From contig NC_059428.1 in assembly GCF_021028975.2 (NCBI RefSeq), positions 149,048,001 to 149,112,000 on the forward strand: a stretch of 64,000 bases of DNA. Direction: 5' to 3'. A program made the translations under genes and the position numbers. Below the pieces are notes generated by a model, which worked only from the letters and a program-made list of their open reading frames with translations, was not told the origin of the DNA and ran no database searches. How positions within the stretch are numbered: position 1 is the stretch's first letter; every line of letters begins with the position of its first letter. Source of the DNA: Sphaerodactylus townsendi (taxonomy: Eukaryota). Shown here one piece after another: positions 13,612 through 64,000 of the stretch.

Positions 13612-13861
13612 NNNNNNNNNNNNNNNNNNNNNNNNNNNNNNNNNNNNNNNNNNNNNNNNNNNNNNNNNNNNNNNNNNNNNNNNNNNNNNNNNNNNNNNNN
13701 NNNNNNNNNNNNNNNNNNNNNNNNNNNNNNNNNNNNNNNNNNNNNNNNNNNNNNNNNNNNNNNNNNNNNNNNNNNNNNNNNNNNNNNNNNNNNNNNNNNN
13801 NNNNNNNNNNNNNNNNNNNNNNNNNNNNNNNNNNNNNNNNNNNNNNNNNNNNNNNNNNNNN
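13612..13861. other. Assembly gap (250 N)
   Basis: Run of N. Confidence 1.
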
Positions 13862-44582: not shown

Positions 44583-47500
44583 TCAGCCCAGCACGCTGTC
44601 GTTGAAAGCCAGGCAGACGACGGCCTTCTGGTGGCCACTGTACTCCCTCTTGATCTCCCCCGTCTCCACGCACCACAGTCTGGCCAGATTATCAGAGGAG
44701 GCTGGGAAGGGGGAGACAAACAGAGAGAGGTCAGGAGGTCAGGCTGCTGGGAAGAGCAGGCACTGGGGGGGGGGGGCAGGACCAGGAGTCCCCATGGTCC
44801 CTGCCTCTCTCACTCCCTCGCTTGAGGGCTGATCTTAGCTCCTTTGCCCTCTAGTCTGCAACCCGGGAAGAGCAATGACCCAGTTGACAAGGGCAAGGGA
44901 AGAGAACTTCTGAAGGAGAGCCCCAGCCCAACCCCCCATTCGGCTACTTGAGGCAGCAGAAAGGGCATCCCAAGGGGGCTCGGCTTCAGAGCCCTCTAAG
45001 GCCTGCATTCTCACTGGGAAAAGGAAGCATCAGGTCAGAGCACCCCGGGGCTGACCCCTCCACGTTCAGCACCCCTCATGCCCACTTCCTGGACTCTCTC
45101 ACCAGTGACAATGTACTGGGAGTCTCCTGAGAAGGCGCAGTCCCACATCCAGCCACGGGAGGTCTCCCCCGGGTTGTTGCTCTTGATGCTCAACTCTGTC
45201 ATCAGGGAGAAGTTGGACGTCTTCCAGATCTTGCAGGTCTGGTCAGCGGAGCAAGTAGCCAGGAGGCTGCAGCAGAAGAAAGAAGGCAGGTTCCATTGTT
45301 GTGGGCAGAGGACAGCTTGTGCATCAGAATCCTTGCAGCGCCAGCCCTGGAGAGCTCAGAATCGACAGTGTAGCTTTCTCCCCACCCCAGGCCACAATGT
45401 GGCACCCACACAAATGCTTTGATGTGTGTGAGGAGTAAAGCAGGGAAAGATTTCCCGAGGCCACTCACTGATGGATAGGTCTGGGCTGAACTTGCACTTT
45501 GGGAAGGCGCTATAACTTGGTTGTGTCGCTTGGGAATCTTTGGTCTTTAGGATGAGTTAGGAATGCACCACCGATGCTCCAATGCCTCCCGTTAAGTTCC
45601 ACACGTAACAGTTGCCCTGCAAGGAAAGGGGGGCAAACAGACCAACTCAGGCTACTGAGCTCTCCACCCTTCTGCCCATGACTTTCGAGCTCTGGCTGTC
45701 CCACTGCCCCCCCCCCCCCCCCCGGCAGAAGGCAAAGCAACAGCCCACCCTCCCAGGATTGTGCACGTGGTCACCGAGCAGGCTTGCTTGCTTACTGAGC
45801 TGTTGACGGCTGCCATGTAGCTGGCGTCAGGGTCGATGTGTACGGAGTTGACGGAGACTTCCGGCTCCGGGATGAGCTGCTCGTTGTGGTCTGTTTTCAA
45901 GTCCCAGATGTGAATGGCTCCGCTCTGGTCCCCCACAATCAGTTCTGCCTGAAAGGGAACGGGAGAAATCAGGGGCCCGTGCCATCAACTGCATGATGCC
46001 CGAGAACGGACCAGGAGGTCAGAATACCTGATTTGGGTGCAGGCAGACGCAGTTGATGGGCGCGTTCACTTGGAAGATGCGCTGGCACTGCAGGTTGCGC
46101 GATCTGGGAACGGAAGGGACACGGGGTGATTCAGGGGCAACGGCACAGTAGCCCTCCATGCTGTGTGGCTGGTTTTCCCCCCAGGGAACTCCAAAGCCCC
46201 TCAATCTGCCGGGAACGCCTCTCGCCCAAGCCACAACGGACGCTGTTTTTACTTTTCTTCAGGCCTGATGAGATTCTGAAACCTCCCACAGGAGACCGTC
46301 CAAGTGGGTCACGCCCAAGATTTGGGGCTCTTCATAAAAAGACAGAATTTAGGGCAAGATAAGGGGAACCTTCTAATAAACACCCGGTGCTGTGTCATTT
46401 CTAGGATAACTTTTTACAGAACCACAACCATTGACATGTACCCTCTGCCTTCTCTAGCACGGCCGGTGGTCCTTCATACTTCTGATGCCGTTTTGTTTTT
46501 TAAAAAATGAGATCCAGGAGCCAAAAGCTTGCGGTATAAAGAAAGCAGAATTTAAACAGCCAGATCTTAAAATACCAAAAAGGGGTTTCAGAGGCCGTAA
46601 TTCTAAATTCTCTTGTAATGAGGGATGTGCTCCTGAACAGCCCCCTCCCCACTCTGAACCAGAACCAAAGCGAGGCACCGGAGGTCCCAGATGCGAGCCA
46701 TGCAGTCTTCGCCTCCCGTGTACATCCAGCGGCCGTCTTCATGGAACCCCACAGACGTTATGTTCTTGCTCACGCCGTCGTAGTTGATCACCGGGTTTGG
46801 GTTGTTGGAGTTCAAGTCGTACATCCGAATGTGCTGGTAGCCTGCAGGACAGACACAGGTGGACAGTTTCTTGGTGCGTTAGAAGGGCTGGAACAACCAG
46901 AGTGGGTCTTGTGGCATGTTAAATGAATTCATGATGGCAGAAGTTTTTCTGGCCCCCAAAGTCTGCTTTTGGGGGATATTTGGTGCTTCTGACATTACAT
47001 AGAAAACACAGAACTGTTATCAATCTTGAGGCAGTAGTTTAATACTATTATTGCATTTTGTACTGATCTTCGTTGAGAGACTCTGTGCTCAAAGACAGGC
47101 TAAAAATTCTCTGAAGAAAGAGCAGTCAATACTGTGGAATTTGAAGGGCAGGCTAGCCTCCATCTAACTGTCTGCATTTGCTCCAGTCTGCACCTTCCAC
47201 CCACCCCCCTCGGCTCCTTGGATGAATTTTTAGTACCACAAATTTGCCAGCTTTTAAAGCCCTTTTAAGTGATTGATCTATCAGTCCTCTTGCTGTTTTC
47301 CACCTGCTGAATGTGTTATTCCAGCACAGATGTTTGTTTTATGTTGCATCGAGGTTTAAAAATGTCAAAAAGGAACAAAAAAATTGATTACTTTAAAAGC
47401 CTGCTAAAATAATGAAAGAGGCAAGAATGGGGGCGGAGGGGGGGCACCAAAACAACTCCCCCCAAAAGGAATTGCATCATGCAAGTCTGAAAGGTCAGGA

Positions 47501-48489
47501 AGGGTTACTGCTGTGTCTGGCAGGAGAGGGGAGCACTTATAGATCTCTGCTTTTAAGGTCTTCAAACTTGGAGACAAGCAGGAAAGAGGAAGAGCCAACT
47601 TCAAACGGAAATCCAGGTGTGGCCGTTCGGCTAAGAAGTCAGCCAGCCCTTGATCCAACCTCCTGTCACTGAAAGGGACAACCGTAAACATTATATGTGG
47701 TGGTGGCAGAAAGTGTAGTCAAGTGGCAACCTCGTAGGGCTTTCAAGGCAAGGGACGAAGGGGAGTGGTTTGCCATTGCCTGCCTCCATATAGAAACCCT
47801 GGACTTCCTTCATGTCTCTCCTCTTAGCTTTCAAGATCTGATATCAGGCTACCCGGGGTTATATATTATATACTCTACCTCCAAGTAACACTGTGCCATG
47901 TTTAGTCCACTACTCTGGGAGACAGTGCATCCTTGGGTCTCTAACTCCTCAATGTTTTAACACGGATGGGCTCCAGCCATAAATTTACCCTTGGAAAGAG
48001 TGTTTCTTGGGCCACTGCTGTCTGGGCCTTTCCCACCTCCAAGAATCCTAGGGCCATAGTTCCAAAAACAGTGCAGAGAGTTCTCCAGTTCAGATCCCCA
48101 GCGCCCATCTTGCACTGGAGTCCTGTGCAAAGCCCTGCAGGAGGAAGGATCTATCCCCCCTCCCAGGGTGGCACCTCATTCCTACCTGCAGCCGCTATCA
48201 TGCTACGGTCTGGTGTGATCTCCAGGGCATTCACCTGCTGGTTCCTCTGGTTAAGAAAGATTTGTTGGGTAATGGCTGAAAAAAGGGCGGGCAAGACTGC
48301 GTGGATTGTAGGAGCAAACGCCCTGCCCTACCTGCCTGGCTTCTCTTTTCGGAAGGATACAGAGTCCTGGTGCTGGACAGTTCGGGTGCATATCCCGCTG
48401 TGGGCCTGCCAGAACCGAACCGTGTGGTCGTAGCCTGCGGTGGCCAGGATCACTGGGTCGCTGCCCACCGTGCCCTGGGCTGTGTTCAT
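44583..48489 (-). CDS. MLST8: Target of rapamycin complex subunit LST8 (WD40), 8 coding exons, one locally garbled
   Basis: Exons 48489-48361, 48237-48186, 46841-46679, 46103-46028, 45948-45796, 45616-45469 (garbled), 45266-45103 and 44701-44583. Translation runs [32 protein letters not shown]...[17 protein letters not shown] non-coding exon donor gtaagt lies at 49152. Confidence 0.96.
47697..47855 (-). mobile_element. 5S rRNA-derived SINE, internally deleted
   Basis: gtagggctttcaaggcaag...gtggtttgccattgcctgcctcc...ccctggacttcctt...cttagctttcaagatctga. Confidence 0.6.
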
Positions 48490-49039
48490 GGCGTCAAGGG
48501 GTACAGCAGGGTGCAATGTTGAGTCCCCAAAGTCAGTGGTTTGCACGTGTACGGAGAGCGCCTCCTTCCTCCAGGACACGAATCCAATGGTGAGCAGAGA
48601 AACAGAGAAAGAAATGAAATGCACAGAAATCAGCCTGCCCCTCCTGTGGGCACGACTGTCTTTGCGAAGAAATCTGAAATAAACCAGAGGAGACCGGGCG
48701 AAACATCACCAGTCAGCCCCAGGATAAAAAGCTTGTCGGGGCAGATGAGGGAGGGAAGGAAGCGCCCCAGAATCCCCCAGACCGACGCAAAAAAAAAAAA
48801 GGACCCCAAATGCTGCCCGAAATCCCGACAACCGAAATCCCGACCAATGGAGGAAGGAAGGAAATGCAGAGATCTGCATAAGCAGACAGGTGCCAGCAAG
48901 TGCAATATGTCCAGTCAACACAGGACTCTGCACTAGCGCGGCCACGACGGTGCAAAATGCCCTGCAGAAATAAAATGCCCTTTGCAAAACATCGCAGGAG
49001 CAAAAGAAAAACCCTTTTGCTGCAACTGTTTGCTGCCAA

Positions 49040-49780
49040 GAGAGACGCGCAATCCGCGCCCCCCCCCCGCCTCCCCCAAAGGGGGCCAGCACCCCTCCCC
49101 CATTAACGGGGGGGTCCCACACTCGGGGGAGGGGCCGAAGGGGGTCACTTACCACCAGAAAAGGGGAGAGTGGCGGGGCGCATGCGCCTTCCGGGGCAGG
49201 ACTGGCCGGTCTGTGCTCTCCCCCGCCCCAAGCCCGGTAGGAGGACCGCAGCGCCCCCTGCCGGCGCGGAGGAGGAAGAGGGCGCTCGCCCAGCTGAGCA
49301 TGCGCAGTGCCTCTCGCGTGCCTCTTCCCCTGTCATCCTCCCGGTTCTGTTCCGAGTACCCCGTTATGGGCCCGGCGGGCCTCGCAGGCGGCGCTTTGGG
49401 TCGTCGTCCGGCGCCTGCGCGTGGCCGGCTTGGCAGGAGGGGCAGGAGAGCCGCCTTCCCCCCGCGGTAGGGAAGCCCCTTGCAGAGGTGGGGGAAGGGG
49501 CCTCACCTGCCGCAGAGGAGCACAGCAGGTGAGCGGAAAAGGCGGGTGAACCTGCCTCAAGAGGGGGGCCACAGGCAGAGGGGGTCCGGCAGGTCCATGG
49601 GGGTCATGGGGACTGGCCAGAGAGAACCTCCATGTTCAGGGGCAGTCAACCTCTATATCCTAGTAGTGGCAACAGGCTACATCAGGGGCTGCTGTCGGGG
49701 GCGGGGCGGCCGGAAAAGCCCCCCCCCCAGGAGCCGTGCTCGGGGCCGCCCCCTCGAGCTCAGGAGCTGCTGGACTCCCC
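49040..49780. promoter_or_regulatory. Bidirectional CpG-island promoter of MLST8 and the HEXD-like gene
   Basis: CpG-rich. NRF1 palindrome gcgcatgcgc at 49178-49187 with an adjacent ETS cttccgg, and a second NRF1-like tgagcatgcgca at 49295-49306. Outward-facing donors at 49152 (-) and 49529 (+, cag|gtgagc). Confidence 0.75.
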
Positions 49781-52700: not shown

Positions 52701-53313
52701 TTCCGAAGCAGCTTCCTTTGAACCTGCAAACAAATTCCGGCTTTTCACTTGGTGCTGCTCAGCAGCACCCAACTCCAGCAAGCCGGCTCAGGGCCAATCC
52801 CCACAGGAGTTCTTAGCTATGCAGTGCCATGGAGATGCCACGGAGCCCCGTCCCCACGCTGCAGGTGCTCCGGCTCCCTCCCTCCCTCGGCCTCCTCCCT
52901 CCCCGAAGCCTTGCCTGTGTTGCTGCATGTGGGAATTGGAGTTAACCTGGAACAAATGCAGGAATGTGGAGGCTTCAATCAAGAGCCGGGGGCTTAATTG
53001 GTGACGGGCTGGCCTCTTTCAACAGACCTGAGCAAGTGGAGGAAAAATGTTCAGATCTTGCACCTCTTAAATAGCACTTGCTGGGGGGGCGGAGGTGGGG
53101 AGCTAGACAGGGATTGTGTCATGGGGTGGAGGTGGAGGTGGGGGGGGGTTACCTTTTCCTCCCAGTTAGTGTCCATATAGATCACTCTATAAGGTTGGCT
53201 TTAGGCTTAATGGGGAAGGACCTTGGATTCTAGCAAGAGATTCCACGCGTTGTCATTCCTTCTGGCCTCGCAGCCCCTCTGCAACGACAGCTTCTTTCCC
53301 CTTCTCCTCAGAA

Positions 53314-56300
53314 ATGGTGCTCCATCGCAACCAGAAGCTGAATCTGCTGCGGATTGTGGTGCTGCTGACGGTCGCCCTGGCCGGCCTCAAGTTTTTCTTC
53401 CGGGACAGGTGAGTGCTTGGGGGAGGGGGAGGGCGTGCAAGGCCCTAGCTGGGGAGAGCCTGTGGGTGATCCAGAGAGCAGAACTGCCAGATTGAGCTCT
53501 TCTTGGACTGGGTGAAAGGGAGGGTCGCTTCCCCCTCCCCAAACGTCATTGGGGCATCAATAGACTTCTGAGAGACTGTCTAGCTGCAAACTCCATACTT
53601 GTGAACTGCAAGTTTGGTTCCATTCAGTCCCACGGAACAGTGGCTATGATTTGCTGGGCGGAGCAGCTACTGGAGGGAGGATGGGACATGCCAGGCCATC
53701 AATTCCCAGCAGAACGGCAGGGGCTGGGCTGTATTTTTGTGTTCCCAGAATTCTGCCTGCAGCTAGGCAGGCGTCCTGGACTGGCTCATGGGCGGGGCCG
53801 TCTTTGCTGGGGAACCGGGAATTATCCTTGGCCCCGGGAAGAGATCCGCACGCAGCAGATGCTTCTCGCTTGGGGCTTTTCTGTGCTGAGCCGTGTCATT
53901 TGCTCCAGAGGCAGCCTGGCCTCTGAGGCTGCTCTGCTTTCCTTCAGCTGTTCTGCCTCCCCAGAGTTCTGCTTTCTTGTATAATTGAAGGTCTGGTGAC
54001 CTTTAGGCTAGAAAAAATGAGGGGGGAAATTAGGTTTAATTTAGCACTCAGTTTACTAGTGAGACAAGGTCTTCCTAAGGATGTCTACGTAGGATGAAGA
54101 AGAAGAAGAAGAGTTTGGATTTATATCCCCCCTTTCTCTCCTGCAGGAGACTCAAAGGGGCTTACAATCTCCTTTCCCTTCCCCCCTCACAACAAACACC
54201 CTGTGAGGTAGGTGGGGCTGAGAGAGCTCCAAGAAGCTGTGACTAGCCCAAGGTCATCCAGCTGGCGTGTGTGGGAGAGTGCACAGGCTAATCTGAATTC
54301 CCCAGATAAGCCTCCACAGCGCAGGGCCGACAGGAAGCTGAGGAATCAAGCCGGTTCCTCCAAGATTAGATACCACGAGCTCCTTGGCCTCCTGCTGCCA
54401 TGCTGCTGCACACACACACACTGCTGCACACTACGCCACTGCTACACACACACACACACACACACATTCTGTTGGATGTGGCTTCTGGGTCTGAAAACAA
54501 CTTCTTTCTCAACATGGTACCTAAATGGAACCTCCATATTTGGAAGCAGTCTAGCCTGGGGAGTCAGCGGTGAAAAGAGGTAGAATATCAGTGGCTAAAA
54601 ATCTTGAGCCAGATTTGTTCTGGGCATCCTGGAAGGGGTCGTACAGGCAGGGGATGTCCGCTCACCCCCTGTTTCCACACATGCAGCTTCACACTGGATC
54701 AGCGCAAAGACACTAGCGGGGAGAGCGGCTTCTGGGGCAAAGCCGGGGAGCTCAAGCAGTCTGCCAAGCCCTGGGATGGGTTGCCGGCGCTCCTGGAGAC
54801 CAAGGTGGCCGCTGCGGGGCAAGAGAGTCGGAAGCAGCCGGTCTGGGATTTCAGCACCACCCAAATGCGGCTGGTGCATCTTGACCTCAAGGGGGCAGCC
54901 CCCAAAGTGTCTTATTTGGAGCAGGTGAGCAAGGAGAGGGGAGGGAGGGCGCAGAACGTTTCCCTTGCGTCTCTTCTTGCGCGTCTGACAGCGGTGTGAT
55001 TTGCAGGCGTTCTCAGGTGGCGACGCTTCTTGCCATCCCACCTGATGTTAGGTTTCTTTGCCCACTAAAGTGCTGTCCAAAGGTGGGGTTTTTTTTGGGG
55101 GGGGGTCTGCCACCCCAGGCACAGAGGGGGTGCCCAGCCAGCGATGTGACTTCTCCCAGCCCGCAGCCAGAGAATGGCGGTTCTTTTGTGGCATGAGGAA
55201 GCGGGACCGGTCGTATTCCTGTTCCTCCGCAGGTCTTCCCGCTCTTCTCCAAACTGGGCGCCAACGGGATCCTCATTGAATATGAGGACATGTTTCCATT
55301 CAAGGGAGAGCTGGAAGTTTTGAAGTCTCCATATGCTTATAGGTAAGCAGGAATGTTTTTGGGGGAGTAGGGGGGGCTGGGATGGCCGAGTGTCCTCACT
55401 GATGAGGAGATCTTCCAAGAGGCTGCCTGTTTGGTTTGCAAGATAGAGAAGGGTCACGTGACATGAATGTCAGGAGACCCCTGTTGGATCAGGCAGCAGA
55501 GGCCTGCCAAGTGCTTCTCAAGACAGTGGCCACCCAATTCCTCTGGAGGTCCAACAAGAGGGCACTGAGGCCAAGGTTGTCCTCCGATGCGGCCTCCCAG
55601 CCTGTGGAATTCGGAGGAAGAAGAGCAGTTGAGAAGATTGTCCGCTTTTCCAGTCGCGAAGCCCTTCTGAACTTCCTGTGTCTTTGTGTGAGGTCTCCTT
55701 TCCTCTCCTGGCTGGCCATTTGCAGCTGGCTTAGCAGGGCCCTGTAGGGTTTTCAAGGCCGGTGAAGTGCAGAGGGGTTTGCCGTTGCCTGCCGCAGCAA
55801 AGTGACCCTGGACTTCCACGGGGGTCTCCCACCTGAGCACTACCCTGTTCAGCATAAAGATGTGTGAATTCATCTGCCATTTCCTGGACCATCTTTGTTG
55901 CAGGATGCTCCACTTGGGTCCTAGTGCCTTGCGGAGGACAGAACTCGGTAGGCACTAGGACCCAAGCAAAGCATTCCAGGAGAAAGATGGTCCAGGAAGT
56001 GGCAGATGAATTCACACATCTCCTGTCGTCCTTATCCTGAACAGGGTATAACTAAGGCTGGTGCTTCTTAGCTTCCCAGGTCCTATGAGAGGGGGCTGTT
56101 AGCCTCCCCGGCCATCCTCTTCTTAGAGGTGCTCTGGCTTCCTACTTGGACCGGCTCTGGCTTTGGGCCCTGTGGCTGGCCGGCCTGGCACCCCCGCCCG
56201 AGGCTGGCTGGCTGGCTGGCTGGTTCCAAGGGCTGTCCTGTGCTGACCGGCACTCCCGTCTCTTGACAGCGAAGAGGATGTTGAGAGGATCCAGAATCTG

Positions 56301-59300
56301 GCTGAAATCAATAAGCTGGAGGTGATCCCGCTGGTGCAGACCTTTGGGCACGTGGAGGTAAGTGGATCCTCCTTCTCCGCTGACCCCTGGCCAGCTGTGG
56401 CTTCTGCCAGAAGAGCCCTACTGTGGTCTCCGTGGCCAACTAGCCACGGAGGTGGGAGAAGCTGGCTTCAAATCTGGTCAGGCCAGTTCTGGCTCCATGT
56501 GCTGGATGCCGGTTGCTCTTGTGAACAAACAGTTCACGGGGGGGTTTGGGAATGCAGGAAACTGAGGAGACCTTGGGAGACCTAAGTGAACAAGCAGGGC
56601 GAGGGGCAGATCCCGCAGGGCATGGCTGTGGGTCAGCGCCCTTTCTGCCCCCCTCCCAGTTGACTTTGCCCCTGGGCCTTGAATGGCAGATGCAGGCAAA
56701 GAGGCTCTTAGCGAGGACGGAGGAGCCGCAGGCAGGTCCCTTCTCCTGGAGTTCCCTTGCAAACGCACTCCAGCCCCGCTCCCTCGCCCATCCCCTCTGC
56801 TGCTCTCTCGCAGTTCATCCTGAAGCACGACAAGTACCGGCACTTGCGGGAGGTGGAGCGATTCCCCAACAGCTTCAACCCCCACGTCCCGGAGACGCTG
56901 GCCGTTCTGAAGGCCCTGATCACCCAGGTGCTGAGCAAGCACAGGCGCTCCAGCTGGGTGCACATTGGGGCCGATGAGGTAAGGGGAGCCCCCTTCTCCC
57001 CCACCCACACCAACCTCCTACTTTCTTGCAGGGCCGTTGAGCCCCCTGACCCCACCTGGGTCCAGGCCAGCCCGTGACCCACCCCAGTGACCCCTGAGTC
57101 CCCTTTCCTCTCTTCCCAGGTCTTCCACTTAGGGGAGGGGATGGATTCCAAGAACTGGCTGAGCCGCAATGCCGGCGACGTGGGCAAGATGTTCCTGAAC
57201 CACATCCGGGAGGTGGTGGACTTCATTGCCAGCCAGGACTGGGGGTTCCAGGTGCTCATGTGGGACGACATGCTCCGCAAGGTCAGCGTGGCAGCTGTCC
57301 AAGGTGAGCCTCTGGCTGCTCTGACCCCTGCACAGCCGCGGAGTTGAAGTCCCCTGCAGAGAGAGGCTGAGCTGCTCTGATGTCACGGAAGGGCTGAGCG
57401 GCTCTGATTGTAGAGAAGGGGGTGCTGGGAGGTCTCCAAAAAAGATGGGGAGAAGAGGTGGGAGCCCAGGGAATTGTGGGTCTTGGGCGGGGGCAGGTTA
57501 AGAAGGCACAAGCGTGGAAGGAGGGATGGCCCAGAGAGAGGAGACCCAAAGGAAGCATCTGAAAGAGAGAGAATGTTTAAAAGGAGACAAGAACACGCAG
57601 AGGCAAAGAAGGCAGACATTTGAGTATTGGGTCGATTCCCCACGGACAATTAGTCGCATGGAACTCACATGAAAAAAAGAGGTTTCAGGCATGCCTCCTC
57701 ACTGCTTGAGCGACGAAGGGGGTTTCTTCCCGGCTCTGTCACTCGTCTCCCCCCTTGTGTTTTTGCCGTACCAAGTTGGAAGTACAACTTTTTGTGTTGC
57801 CACAGTTCTTTTCTGTCTCGGGGGCGGGGGGGCTAATCCTCGCTATTTTCCCGCCCTGGAGAGTGACGCAGATCCCGGCAGTGAGGAGTTTGAAACCCTG
57901 ATGCAGTTCATTTTTAAACTTGGTTTAAACTACATTTAATTTCCAGTGGGGAATCGGCCTTGGTTCGAAATGGCCTTCCAGACCCTTGGGCTGGAAGGTT
58001 CTAATCCATAAGGCATTGTTTGAGGAAGCTAATTTCCTCCCACCTTTTGTGTATTTTTTGTGTTGCAGACTCCGGTATCGCCCAGCACGCTTCTCCCATG
58101 TTATGGTTTTATGCTCCAAACTTTGATGCACAACAAATAGGTAATGGGGCAGGTGGGGTGTGTTTATATGTGTGTTTATTATTTTATGTGTATTTATTAG
58201 ATTTTATTTATATCCTGCCCTAACTGACAGAGGCCAGGCGCAGGGCAGCCTACAGACATGCTAAAATACATAATATAAAACAAGAAAAGTGATATCTCTT
58301 CCTAAAACCCTAAAAGATGGCAAAACAATAAGCAGTCCTATGAAAAACCCGCCTCCCCCATCTCGACACCCCCCCCCCTCTTGTCTGAGGACCGTCTCAG
58401 CCTGGGGAGAAGGAGGGGAGCAGCGCCAAATACGTTGTATGTGTTAGCCAATAGCATTTGGTTGGTCGGTCGGTCGGTTGGTCAGTCGGGTGGGTGGGAG
58501 GGAGGCCGGCCAATAGAATGTGTACAGACGGTGGGTAGATGGATGGCCTCATCCAAAGGCCTGGTGGAACATCTCTGTCTTGTAGGCTCTACAGACCTGT
58601 TTAAGGTTCTGCAGGGCGCTGGTGTCAACTGACAGAGAGTTCCACCAGGCAGTGTGTGTGCACAAGGTTGTCGGATCAAGGGCTGTCTCAGTAGTTGTGG
58701 GCCTGTGTTTATTCCCGAGGAAAGGACTCACTCGGGGGCTTCCTCAGCCACTCCTGTGGTCCTCTCTCCGAGGCTTTGGCATGCAATGTTCCCATATGTT
58801 TGAGCTGCTCTCAGTACTTGCCTTTGTGGAAGTAAAGCCCCCACAACACAATGGGCCTTTCTCCCAAGTAAGTGGATCTTAAGAGCCTTTGAAAATGGAG
58901 GCTGAATTTCCTGAGGGGCTGCTCGTAGGTGATGCACTTGCAGAATTTCCAAGCGCTGTGAAGCACCTTGGGCAGCAGTTGGCACTAACCCGAAACATAA
59001 CCGGAGCGGGCGTGCCACACTATGACGGCCGTGGTCTCTTGCCTTTCCTCCTTGCAGGGAAATACGTCTCCAAATACGCCGAGTGTGGCTTCAAGACCAT
59101 CTGGTTTGCCAGCGCCTTCAAAGGCACCACCGGCCCTGCTCAGGCCTGGACCCCTCTGCACCATCACCTCCAGAACCACCTGCAGTGGCTGAGCGTCATG
59201 CGGTCCGTGGCCAAGGCCCCCTCCACGAGGCTCCAGGGCATCGCGCTGACCGGCTGGCAGAGGCGAGGCCTGACGCTGGGTCTTCTGGGAAGGGCTGGCG

Positions 59301-62300
59301 GTGGCCAGGGAGCTCGCGTTCTGCCATCGACATCCCGTGGGGATCACAGGAGAAGGGCCCCCCCCCCCACTTCTGGCCTCTGAGAACTGCCTGCAGTTAT
59401 TCTGCAAAGCACCCCATAGCATTCAGAGAGTCATTCTAGCTCCTGCACGTATTCCAGGCCTAGGTCCTGGCAGGGAAATAGGGGCTGGAACTCTGATAAA
59501 AATCGGCGGGTTCTGGGCGTTTGTGTGCCGCCTTTCCACCCAAATAGAGTCTTCACAGCGGGCCCCTCTGGTGAGACTGGAGCTGCTTGGGAAAAAACAG
59601 GGTTTGTCAAACTGGCCTTTAGCATGTGTGTAGAGACGGGGTCTGTGATCTCGGAAGGGTTTGCCCCTATTCCTCCGCCTACCAACAGCCAGTGAGGTAT
59701 AACGTGTAAGAGTGGTGGACTCTCATCTGGAGAACTGGGTTTGTTTCCCTGCTCCTACACATGAATACCTTGGACCAGACCCAGTCCTCTGCAAACTCTC
59801 TCAGCCCCACTGCCTCACAAGGCATCTGTTGCAGGGAAAGGAAGGGAAGGAGCTTGTAAGCTGCTTTGAGAACTCCTAAGAGTTGAGAAAAGCAGGATAT
59901 ACATCCAAATTCCTCTTCTTCTCAAGGGGGGGCTTGAATCAGAAGGATATTTGCTGCAGCTTCACAGGGTCAAACCAAGCGAAAGGAAGGTCGTCTGGAT
60001 GCGTGTTGAGTGGGTTTTGGTGAAGAGCACCACCACAGTCACACTCCCTGGGGCTGCAGGTGGGAAACCCTTTAGCCTCCCACCCCACAGTGTAACAGCT
60101 GACCTCTCTCCCCCTCTGCTCCCCAGGTACGACCACTACTCGGCCCTGTGTGAACTTCTTCCTGTTGGCATCCCGTCCCTGGCTGTGTGTCTGCAGACTC
60201 TGGTGAATGGTGAGGGGGCTGAGCTGGGAACAAATGTGGGAGACGTGGGCCGGAAGGGACTGCCCTGTGCTGCTCAGCCTGAGGTATGGCGGCAGCGGCA
60301 ACTTTCCAGAGAGAGGAAAACAGGGAGGTTGTTCCAGGTTACTTTCATCCTGCCTGCAAATCCTGCAGAAAGGAGTCAGGACCCGCGGGGCAGTGGCGGG
60401 AGGAGGGTGCATTTTGTGTCAGGTTGTGCTGCCTGGTTGAGGCAGGGGAGAGTCACTTCCTAACCCCCAGTGACGAATGAGCTCAATAAAAGGTGATCCC
60501 TGAACAGGTGAATGGCATTGTTTGTTTTTAAGGGAAGGGCCATGATTCACAGGTAAGGCACCCTCTTGACGTGAAGAGCCATAGGTCCTGCATTCAGGTC
60601 CTAGCAACACCCACGAAAAGGATTTCAGGGTGGTGGGCAGTGGGTATTGGGAAGGGGTTTTTCGCTGCTCCCAGCCCTGAAGAGTAGCTGCTTACCAGAA
60701 AGGACTGTGGCCAAACTCTGTGCGGGACTTATATGCTTATATTCGCTTATTCGTGCTGTATTCGTGACTAGCGTGAAGCATCGGTGGTCTGGGATTGGGT
60801 GGGCAAATCTTCTCTAAAGATAGGAGATGCGACTTTCTGCATCAGAGTGTGGTTCTAGATCTGCAGGGCTCAGGGGCATGTCAAGATGGCTTGGTGAAAA
60901 GGATTGTTAAAAATCTTTGCTGGCAGACTGATTTATTTATTTGTTTGTTTAAAATATGATTTTCCTGTCTTTCTGCTCAGCATTTTAGGTTCCCAGGGAA
61001 CAAGGGGTGGGCAGGGGGCTCTAATCTTTACCTCCCCAACTGCTTTCTCACTGGAGAAAGTTAGCTCCATCGTTTGGGGGAAGAAACGGTTTGTGGCGGA
61101 GTCAGGGGGGGTTGAGATTGCCAGTGAGAAAACAGCAAGGGAGGAAAAAGTTAGCTTCTCTCTTCCCCACGCCCTTCTCACCTTTGAGGAAGCCGTTCTG
61201 CCAGCTGAATTTGCATGGGGAAAAAGTGCTGCTTAAAAGAAAGGCGGGAGAAATTGCAGCGAGAAGCTCAGCTCTTCGCCCCGCTGCCGCCCCTGCGAGG
61301 TGGTTCTGAACCCTGCATTCCAACGCTTGCCAGACCTGTGCAAAATGATGGGTGGCTTTTCTTCCCGCCCACCCCCTCCCCCTCCCCCTCAGGTGGGTTT
61401 AATGAAGCCGCCAAAAAGAAGGTCTTGGAGATTCTGGGCTTCCAGAGCCTGCAGCTGGAGAAGAGCACCTGGTGAGTGGAGTGGGGGGCCACTTCCCTCC
61501 TGGCTATTGGGGGCAAAGCCGGGGCCGATGAGATCAGCTGTGGCTCGGGATAAAGCATCTTGTCGGCATGCAGATGGTCCCAGGGTCAATCTCCACCATC
61601 TCCACTTGAAACGGTCAGGTAGCAGGTGGTCATAGAATCATAGAGTTGGAAGAGACCCCAAGAAGGACCATCCAGTCCAACCCCCTGCCATGCAGGAACA
61701 CACAGTCAAAGCACTCCTAACATATTCTCATCCAGCCATCCAGCCTCTCTTGAAAAACCTCCAAAGAAGGAGACTCCACCACACTCTGAAGTGGTGCATT
61801 CCACTGTCGAACAGCCCTGACGGTCAGGAAGTTTTTTCTGATGTTTAGGTGGAATCTTTTCCCCTTGAACCCATGACTCCTGGTCCTCGTCTCTGGAGCA
61901 GCAGAAAACTGGCTTGCTCCCTCACCAACATGACATCCCTTCAGATATCTAAACATGGCCATCATGTCCCCTCTTAACCTTCTCTTCTCCAAATTGAACA
62001 TCCCCAGCTCCCTCAGTCTCTCCTCCTAAGGCTTGGATTCCAGACCTTTGACCATTTTGGTTGCCCTCCTCTGGACCCATCCCAGCTTGATGTGAAAGTC
62101 CTCAGCCGGAGACGCTGGAGAGCTGCTGCCCGTCAGAGTAGACAGCACTGACTTGAATGGCTGGAAGCTCTGGCTCAGGATCAGGCAGCCTCAGGTGTCC
62201 TGTTTGTGTTAAGTAAGGAGGGAGCAAGCAGAGACGTTGGCCAAGCCACACTGAGAGAAGGCACCTTAGCTACCTGTAGGGCGTCAGACTTGGGTGGCCC

Positions 62301-63528
62301 AGACTAGCCTAATTTTGTCAGATCTCAGAGGCTAAGCAAGGTTGGCCCTAGTTAATTCTCAGGTAGGGACCACCAGAGAAGTCCAGCCCAATTCTCTGCT
62401 TCTCCTCTTGGGGGGTGCTCAGGGCCTTTTGCCGAATGGCCCCCAAATATGGTGCTTGGTAAACTGTGGATTGAGACCTTGGAAGGGGAAAGCACCGGCA
62501 AGTCACGGCTGGCTTATTATGGCGACTCGTGAAAGAAGCCTGGGTTCAGCCTCGTGCTCGTGTTTCCTGCATTCCCGATTCGGCAGAGTCACCCAAAAGG
62601 CCTAAGTGGCTGCTCCGAGGGGCCAGTGGTGCGTCGGGGTGGCTGGGCAGGGGGGTCGTTTGCAGCCCTTTTCTCTCTGCCCCTGTCCCGATTGCTGAGC
62701 CAGCTTAAAACTCAGCCCCCCAACCCCAACCCCTTTGTGTCTTCCAGTGTGGGCAGCGGGGCCTTCCCCGGCTTGGATATCTATCGCATGGTTGAGCAGG
62801 TGAACAGCCAGCTGAAAGACTCTGTCCTCAAAGTCCTGGAAGAGGAGAGGTAGCCATTCTCTACAGGGGTGGGGGGAGGGGCCAGAGCAAAGGGCCGGGG
62901 GCGCTGCTGGGTTAACTGTGCCTCTCTGGAGGCTGCGGCCCTGCTTGCCCTGCCTGCCCTGCCGCAAGCCCAGGTCCCTTCCGGTCCTTCCTGCCAGAAG
63001 AAAGACATCTCAGGTGGCTGGGAGGGAAGATGACTCGGAGGCAGCGTGGGGGTGGGGGTGATGTTGGGGGGGCAGGGAAGTCAGAGCAGCAAGCTGCCTC
63101 TCCCAGGTTGCCCCCAAAAGCAAATCTGCGCTGCTCCGTCCAGCCCCCCACCTCCCATTTGCTCAGCCGCTCTGCTTGGCTTAGAGTATGTCAGATCCCT
63201 GCTCATTCCCCCTGTTAAAAACCCTCTTGCAGTCACCCGGGTGAGATCAGTTCAAGCCAAAGGTCTGGATTTGCTGGTGCCCTCAGAGGGACTCATCTTT
63301 GGGTGGAGTGGGCTGGTTAGCAGAGGAGCGCTTTCCCCCGTGCTTTGGCCCCCTTAGCAGTCTAATGGTGATTTTTGTCTCTCTTTCCCCCTGCCGCCCC
63401 GCCCCCCCCTCAGTTCCATTAAGGGATGGTTTAGCCCATATCACCGAAAGCACCTGTTCGGCAACCAGCATGCAACGCATGCGGAGAGAGCTTACAGGCA
63501 AGCAAAGAAATGCATCAAAGTCGTTTGA
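53314..63528 (+). CDS. Hexosaminidase D-like (GH20) protein with an N-terminal hydrophobic anchor; 3' end probably beyond the window
   Basis: Exons 53314-53408, 54687-54924, 55233-55342, 56270-56357, 56814-56978, 57120-57303, 58069-58140, 59058-59262 (GC donor), 60127-60209, 61393-61471, 62748-62849 and 63414-(63528), all phase-consistent. HEXD-family motifs [27 protein letters not shown], catalytic HIGADE, WDDMLR, ASAFKG, LTGWQRYDH and GWFSPYHR. Confidence 0.93.
54097..54409 (-). mobile_element. CORE SINE (Squam3-like, long subfamily), followed by an interrupted CA repeat to ~54467
   Basis: Reverse complement of the 2618 copy, including the internal ggctaatctgaattccccagataagcc hairpin and the (GAA)n tail. 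Confidence 0.87.
55740..56106 (-). mobile_element. 5S-derived SINE interrupted by a MITE
   Basis: The SINE body at 55740-55842 (gtagggttttcaaggc...ggtctccca) resumes after 56048 (cttagcttcc). Confidence 0.6.
55843..56046. mobile_element. Palindromic Tc1/mariner-type MITE with TA TSD
   Basis: ta|ccctgttcag...ctgaacaggg|ta. Internal arms agatgtgtgaattcatctgcca.ttcctggaccatcttt and aaagatggtccaggaa.tggcagatgaattcacacatct. Confidence 0.8.
58185..58900 (-). mobile_element. Old L2-like LINE 3' fragment
   Basis: AT-rich tail tttattagattttattatatcctgccc and the body segment ccaaaggcctggtggaaca...gagagttccacca resemble antisense squamate L2 3' ends. Boundaries are approximate. Confidence 0.45.
59686..59922 (+). 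mobile_element. CORE SINE (Squam3-like)
   Basis: aagagtggtggactct.atctggagaactgggtttg...ctctctcagcccc...ggagcttgtaagc...catccaaattcctcttcttc. Confidence 0.8.
61631..62089 (-). mobile_element. CR1 LINE 3' fragment nested inside a tRNA SINE
   Basis: catagaatcatag 3' motif. ORF 61717-62001 ([10 protein letters not shown]...[26 protein letters not shown]) is the CR1 ORF2 C-terminus. Host SINE halves lie at ~61536-61630 and 62090-~62195. Confidence 0.9.
62296..62390 (+). mobile_element. 5S-derived SINE head
   Basis: tcagatctcagaggctaagcaaggttggccctagtta...gaccaccagagaa resembles the 5S rRNA internal control region, with many substitutions. Confidence 0.6.
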
Positions 63529-63611
63529 AAAAAGCTGAAAGGAAAAGAGGTTGTGTGGGGAGGGTCAGCTGGAAACGGGGTCTTTCTCACTCTGGTCGGT
63601 GAGGGATGACC

Positions 63612-63856
63612 CAGCGTGGTGTCGTTGTTGACAGCGGTGGACTCTTACCTGGTGAACCGAGTTTGTTTCCCTGCTCCTGCACATGAAGCCTGCAGGGTGG
63701 CCTTGGGCCACTCATAGTTAACTCAAGACTCTCTCAGCCCCACCGGCCTCACAAGGTGTCTGTTGTGGGGAGAGGGAGGGAAAGGAGCTTGTAAGCCACC
63801 TTGAGTCTTCTTACAGGACAGAAAAGTGGGGTATAAATCCAAACTCTTCTTCTTTC
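63612..63856 (+). mobile_element. CORE SINE (Squam3-like)
   Basis: cagcgtggtg head, ctctctcagccccacc..cctcacaaggtgtctgttgtgggg body and ataaatccaaactcttcttc tail. Confidence 0.85.
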
Positions 63857-64000
63857 CCATGATGCAGTCTGAACTGGGGAATTGGGGGCGGGGGTGCTTG
63901 CAGCTGGCGGGGAGAATAGAAATGTGTTGGCCTGGAAAGCAACATTGTTTTTTTCCCAAAATTATGTACCTGCTACGTGTGAGCTCCAAGAGGCAGAGGT

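Follow-up and report, generated by a model that had tools for sequence, protein, structure and literature searches.

Does the gecko Sphaerodactylus townsendi possess, in addition to canonical hexosaminidase D (HEXD), a second gene of this type, and would the N-terminus that it encodes direct the enzyme to the secretory pathway? The question is raised by a locus on contig NC_059428.1 of assembly GCF_021028975.2 (positions 149,048,001 to 149,112,000, forward strand); the whole stretch of 64,000 nucleotides is referred to here as the window, and the positions given are those within it. The gene in question, called HEXD-like below, is real and intact, and its 12 coding exons in the window match residues 1 to 510 of XP_048351543.1 (P0207; hexosaminidase D-like isoform X1, S. 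townsendi) with zero mismatches. A preliminary description of this DNA, made from the letters alone, had guessed that an uncharacterized gene model might already exist, and XP_048351543.1 is that model; the gene is already annotated as a predicted model in more than 100 species. In the literature searched, no paper on a vertebrate HEXD-like (membrane-type) paralogue was found. Relatives were retrieved with exon 8 as the query, XP_048351543.1 was then found by a query with one full-length relative, and the database record was used for all whole-protein queries.

Enzyme family and kinship with HEXD

Against the Pfam profile of the GH20 family (PF00728), the whole protein scored 39.8 bits (cutoff, 22.3) and the exon 5 region alone scored 24.1 bits; in queries made exon by exon, exon 2 aside, no other region gave a score. 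The best solved structure in the Protein Data Bank (PDB) was HEX-2 of Trichuris suis (PDB 8QK1; E = 4e-77 over residues 73 to 482); a PDB query with exon 5 alone gave mainly chance leucine-rich-repeat matches, and 8QK1 appeared there as a weak match (E, 0.04). In T. suis HEX-2, Asp198 and Glu199 are the catalytic pair, and Trp246, Trp272, Tyr274, and Trp348 belong to the pocket (PMC11308363). The gecko residues D231 and E232 align to that pair, and W280, W306, Y308, and W384 align to W246, W272, Y274, and W348, respectively; among 38 relatives, D231, E232, W280, W306, and W384 are invariant, and Y308 is conserved in at least 90%. The HIGADE motif, which the preliminary description had called intact, reads H227-I-G-A-D231-E232 at 56961 to 56978, the last bases of exon 5. 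With the family profile, the motif, the match to a subfamily 1 structure, and the pocket aromatics all present, the HEXD-like protein is, as judged from its sequence, a member of GH20 subfamily 1. Because the catalytic and pocket residues align and are conserved, it should be an active exo-beta-N-acetylhexosaminidase. Catalysis would be substrate assisted and retaining, with Asp231 orienting the 2-acetamido group and Glu232 acting as the acid/base.

The relationship of this protein to HEXD was resolved by a maximum-likelihood tree of 46 proteins, comprising vertebrate HEXD-like proteins, canonical HEXDs, and invertebrate relatives. The HEXD-like clade (support, 100/99) was separated from the canonical HEXD clade (100/96), and both were placed together against the invertebrate proteins (100/95). 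The canonical clade takes in platypus, opossum, mouse, and orang-utan proteins and a protein from a sturgeon; the HEXD-like clade comprises sharks, a chimaera, gar, sturgeon, teleosts, coelacanth, and amphibians, as well as tuatara, turtles, crocodilians, birds, and squamates. Since a sturgeon protein falls inside the canonical clade, the duplication is older than the split between ray-finned and lobe-finned fishes. Both copies are found in many other species, on contigs of different size. In S. townsendi, canonical HEXD is XP_048346755.1, a protein of 478 amino acids that is encoded on a different chromosome and is 49% identical to the HEXD-like protein.

The gecko gene does not qualify as the orthologue of human HEXD, given its place in the sister clade, its MLST8 locus, and the separate HEXD in the same genome. 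The preliminary description had proposed a second vertebrate HEXD gene, and the proposal is upheld both by the division of the tree and by the presence of XP_048346755.1, which means that HEXD-like is not the only HEXD of this genome. Human and mouse HEXD (HEXDC) are members of GH20 subfamily 1 that share with HEXD-like the same fold and the motifs HIGxDE, WDDM, FKG, and GWQRYDH, and the two genes go back to one vertebrate duplication. HEXD-like is a sister copy of HEXD that goes back to early vertebrates and apparently disappeared later on the line to mammals.

The N-terminus and the side of the membrane

The sister enzymes differ most clearly at their N-termini. In HEXD, approximately 10 residues precede the first barrel strand, and a hydrophobic 19-mer (Kyte-Doolittle mean above 1.6) was found in 0 of 100 canonical HEXDs, whereas approximately 110 of 115 HEXD-like proteins have one, located approximately 95 residues before the first strand; this tail-helix-stem N-terminus spans sharks to birds. 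In the gecko, a basic tail and a hydrophobic helix occupy an exon of their own and are followed by a polar stem of approximately 60 residues, just as the preliminary description had stated. Exactly 12 uncharged residues lie between R13 and K26 (53350 to 53391); this segment recurs in 107 of 108 relatives, and a chance open reading frame (ORF) can therefore be dismissed as the origin of the N-terminus. Mean identity is 50% in the hydrophobic segment, 23% in the stem, and 66% in the catalytic domain; within the otherwise disordered, fast-evolving stem, the pair F47-W48 is invariant. The AlphaFold2 model (mean predicted local distance difference test score, pLDDT, 83.7) has a helix at residues 5 to 31, disorder from residue 31 to residue 81, and then a confident barrel with a C-terminal helical bundle. 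In 88 of 108 proteins, the difference in flanking charge favors placement of the N-terminus in the cytosol. A short basic tail, a single hydrophobic segment, a flexible stem, and a catalytic domain together make up the layout of a type II protein; the tail-transmembrane-stem-catalytic arrangement postulated earlier is therefore recovered in the conservation from sharks to birds and in the helix, disordered stretch, and catalytic fold of the AlphaFold2 model.

We favor, with a probability of roughly 55%, the reading of this N-terminus as a type II uncleaved signal anchor. The basic tail would remain in the cytosol; the helix of approximately 21 residues (L9-F29), whose uncharged core comprises the 12 residues between R13 and K26, would cross the membrane; and the catalytic domain, carried on the disordered stem of approximately 60 residues, would lie in the secretory-pathway lumen, in the type II orientation of nematode HEX-2 to HEX-5. 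From there, presumably in the Golgi, the catalytic domain would trim terminal beta-linked N-acetylgalactosamine (GalNAc) or N-acetylglucosamine (GlcNAc) from glycans. When an anchor and a cleaved signal peptide are taken together, it is probable that the catalytic domain is luminal or extracellular. Several observations speak against an uncleaved Golgi anchor, and three alternatives were considered.

The first alternative is that exon 1 encodes a cleavable signal peptide, with an n-region of M1-R13, an h-region of I14-L22, and cleavage after A21-L22-A23, so that a soluble enzyme would be secreted or would reside in a luminal or lysosome-like compartment. This alternative is supported by the positive charge of the n-region and by the uncharged core, which, at 12 residues in 107 of 108 proteins, has the usual length of a signal-peptide core; moreover, of 70 distinct cores, 53 have an A-x-A-like (-3, -1) pair that is correctly placed for signal peptidase, and 51 have Ala at what would be position -1. 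However, the segment is much better conserved than the stem that follows (50% versus 23%), which would be unusual for a signal peptide that is to be cut off and appears to favor an uncleaved anchor. The hydrophobic K-F-F-F sequence continues past the putative cleavage site and prolongs the AlphaFold2 helix to residue 31; the site would therefore be buried in the membrane. Furthermore, the related nematode enzymes have been described as type II proteins. On balance, we consider removal of the segment by signal peptidase to be possible but rather unlikely.

Both an anchor and a signal peptide would expose the catalytic domain to the lumen, and the distribution of N-x-S/T sequons bears on that exposure. 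These are depleted approximately five-fold in the HEXD-like clade (51 seen versus 244 expected, a statistic made unclean by kinship among the proteins), and 81 of 117 HEXD-like proteins have zero. No such depletion is evident in canonical HEXD (122 sequons versus 129 expected) or in the invertebrate relatives. Selection against sequons makes sense only if the protein meets the glycosylation machinery in the lumen of the endoplasmic reticulum, and the depletion therefore argues for luminal exposure. Neither a conserved N-glycan site nor a clade-specific cysteine pair was found in the HEXD-like clade, which is atypical for Golgi glycosidases.

That last result would suit a second alternative, in which the helix serves as a tether to an organelle membrane and leaves the catalytic domain in the cytosol, as a membrane-bound version of HEXD, the sister enzyme, which has been reported to be nucleocytoplasmic (PMC11308363). 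The flank charges, which are neutral or reversed in 20 of 108 proteins, are also in keeping with such a tether. It is difficult to reconcile, however, with the bias toward a cytosolic N-terminus in the other 88, with the three or four basic residues of the 13-residue tail that would need to cross the membrane, and with the clade-specific loss of sequons, which would be unexpected in a domain that faces the cytosol. We judge this orientation to be quite improbable.

The third alternative is that the gecko rarely or never uses exon 1, in which case translation would mainly begin at Met92 or in a different first exon and the product would be cytosolic like HEXD. Some predicted isoforms from woodpecker, tree frog, and axolotl (P0190, P0224, and P0233, respectively) have a different first exon of this kind and are without the helix; these might represent a non-anchored form or might be mispredictions. 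In addition, the public runs that match this gecko DNA, four in number and from one study, are all genomic, and the junction between 53408 and 54687 is a predicted one. Against this alternative, exon 1 is intact and highly conserved, its start codon stands in a good context, and its splice sites are canonical; moreover, transcript contigs of other vertebrates include it. Four transcript-like, intronless Logan contigs of 1.9 to 2.5 kb, half of them from a frog relative and half from a second vertebrate, carry the full ORF with the helix N-terminus, and in three of these, in-frame stops lie upstream. The same N-terminus is present in the rattlesnake UniProt entry T1E6B1, which we take to come from a transcriptome. 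Disuse of exon 1 would be highly improbable in view of these data, and an anchored, luminal enzyme is the reading that we retain.

Gene model, locus, and loss in mammals

The coordinates of the HEXD-like gene are collected in Table 1; those that the preliminary description had given for the first two exons and for Met92 all proved exact on rereading. The start codon (ATG, 53314 to 53316) has A at -3 and G at +4 (AAATGG context). Exon 1 comprises 95 bases and is followed by GTGAGT; exon 2 is preceded by ...CATGCAG and followed by GTGAGC, and the codon divided by this intron (AG/C) encodes Ser32. The sequence RLVHLDLKG after Met92, in exon 2, is the first barrel strand. A GC-AG donor is present at 59263 (AG/GCGAGG), in the intron that follows exon 8, and the remaining introns of the gene in the window are GT-AG. 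Because a pyrimidine tract and AG (...ctcctcag; 53290 to 53313) resembling a splice acceptor immediately precede the ATG, there is probably an untranslated exon farther upstream. Such an exon possibly lies within the CpG-rich stretch at approximately 48750 to 49750 that HEXD-like has in common with MLST8. At its other end, the gene extends beyond base 64000, and its remaining exons are outside the window.

Residues 492 to 509 of XP_048351543.1 differ from those of all other lizards (PRNMESFGSKVLK). At 63467 to 63525, in exon 12, the short-read contigs of all four public runs are without 26 letters of the reference, and every one of the four runs shows three substitutions there; deletion of 16 specified letters in exon 12 restores FGNPRNMESFGSKVLK, as in other lizards. 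These two observations lead us to conclude that the reference has a local cluster of false insertions in exon 12 and that residues 492 to 509 of isoform X1 are therefore an artefact; the true HEXD-like protein probably has approximately 564 residues. A pseudogene was considered and ruled out: the exons are all open, the splice sites are intact, the active site has been kept, and the oddity of exon 12 is an artefact of assembly.

In the gecko window, HEXD-like and MLST8 are arranged head-to-head, with the CpG-rich stretch between them. The order in a loon is a WD40 gene of MLST8 size, the HEXD-like gene, and, directly after it, CASKIN1; in a chimaera, the order is a BRICHOS gene, a WD40 gene of MLST8 size, and the HEXD-like gene. 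Both of these species have the two genes head-to-head, as the gecko does. No neighboring gene was found within 10 kb of the Xenopus HEXD-like locus. Canonical HEXD occupies a different locus, which in a bird lies between an OGFOD3-like gene and CYBC1; OGFOD3 and CYBC1 are also the neighbors of human HEXD. The regions 16p13.3 and 17q25 are presumably paralogous regions that derive from the early vertebrate genome duplications.

Mammals are absent from the 120 best HEXD-like matches, though sharks at approximately 50% identity are present there, and mammals are numerous among the matches of canonical HEXD. Together with the order MLST8, HEXD-like, and CASKIN1, this mammal-free list fits the loss of the gene from between MLST8 and CASKIN1 in mammals, a loss that we regard, on these comparisons of sequence and gene order, as well supported but not proven. 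The earlier suggestion that the gene was retained in reptiles and is missing at the MLST8-CASKIN1 locus in humans agrees with the match list and with the CASKIN1 neighbor in the bird.

TABLE 1 Coordinates of the coding exons of HEXD-like and of its neighbor MLST8 in the window
Feature	Position	Strand	Remarks
MLST8	44600..48480	-	WD40 exons by conserved peptide motifs; first coding exon near 48435
HEXD-like coding exon 1	53314..53408	+	Basic tail M1-R13 (53314-53352); uncharged core I14-L25 (53353-53388); K26-FFF-R-D (53389-53406); first two bases of Ser32
HEXD-like coding exon 2	54687..54924	+	Polar stem S32-T91; F47-W48 at 54730-54735; Met92 at 54865-54867
HEXD-like coding exon 3	55233..55342	+	
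HEXD-like coding exon 4	56270..56357	+	
HEXD-like coding exon 5	56814..56978	+	Ends in H-x-G-x-D-E; catalytic Asp231-Glu232 at 56973-56978
HEXD-like coding exon 6	57120..57303	+	Pocket residue Trp280 at 57261-57263
HEXD-like coding exon 7	58069..58140	+	Pocket residues Trp306 (58104-58106) and Tyr308 (58110-58112)
HEXD-like coding exon 8	59058..59262	+	Trp384 at 59255-59257
HEXD-like coding exon 9	60127..60209	+	
HEXD-like coding exon 10	61393..61471	+	
HEXD-like coding exon 11	62748..62849	+	
HEXD-like coding exon 12	63414..63522	+	NCBI model

Some noncoding features of the window were also recorded. In the introns of HEXD-like, the summed contig depth is 1,000 to over a million at 58401 to 58800, 59601 to 60000, 61601 to 62400, and 63601 to 64000, compared with approximately 100 elsewhere, and many joints link 59871 to approximately 63820; these stretches look like copies of high-copy interspersed repeats. 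Intron 1 contains a CA-rich microsatellite with interrupted CACACA runs (54400 to 54470), and a run of 250 N at 13612 to 13861 marks an assembly gap or a masked stretch.

Comparison with known hexosaminidases and significance

The tail-helix-stem arrangement of HEXD-like is reminiscent of that of HEX-2 to HEX-5 from Caenorhabditis elegans and of HEX-2 from T. suis, which are likewise members of GH20 subfamily 1 with a cytoplasmic tail, a membrane segment, and a stem. At near-neutral pH, nematode enzymes of the HEX-2 to HEX-5 type release GalNAc from LacdiNAc and GlcNAc from N-glycans. They nevertheless belong to an invertebrate lineage of their own, which falls outside the pair of vertebrate HEXD and HEXD-like, and they have sequons at the expected rate, whereas the vertebrate HEXD-like clade avoids them. 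The lysosomal enzymes HEXA and HEXB and the insect protein FDL, which is a membrane-bound N-glycan-processing enzyme, belong to GH20 subfamily 2; they use the same catalytic mechanism and Asp-Glu pair but are distant relatives. Members of subfamily 2 have an additional N-terminal domain, and their catalytic motif is located at a much greater distance from the N-terminus (PMC11308363).

What HEXD does biologically has been described as elusive, and four beta-hexosaminidase genes have been counted in mammals, namely, HEXA, HEXB, HEXDC, and OGA (PMC11308363). Our results indicate that most jawed vertebrates have one further hexosaminidase gene, an ancient sister of HEXD, the N-terminus of which should route the enzyme to the secretory pathway, as in the N-glycan-processing hexosaminidases of nematodes. 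The value of this finding is tempered by the fact that the gene already carries an annotation in so many species and by a function that is wholly inferred. HEXD-like is nonetheless a candidate hexosaminidase for the trimming of glycans in fish, amphibians, reptiles, and birds, and it offers a natural comparison for the question of HEXD function.

In conclusion, it can tentatively be suggested that the membrane-anchored form is ancestral in animal GH20 subfamily 1, that HEXD is derived, and that glycan trimming in the Golgi or at the cell surface has been kept in nonmammalian vertebrates. If this is true, LacdiNAc or GlcNAc termini are trimmed by a nonmammalian enzyme as glycans mature, a processing step that, to our knowledge, has been described elsewhere only in invertebrates and plants. 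The near absence of sequons would then mean that the enzyme has been under selection to remain unglycosylated in the lumen, and the vertebrate glycan repertoire would have been altered when mammals lost this enzyme.

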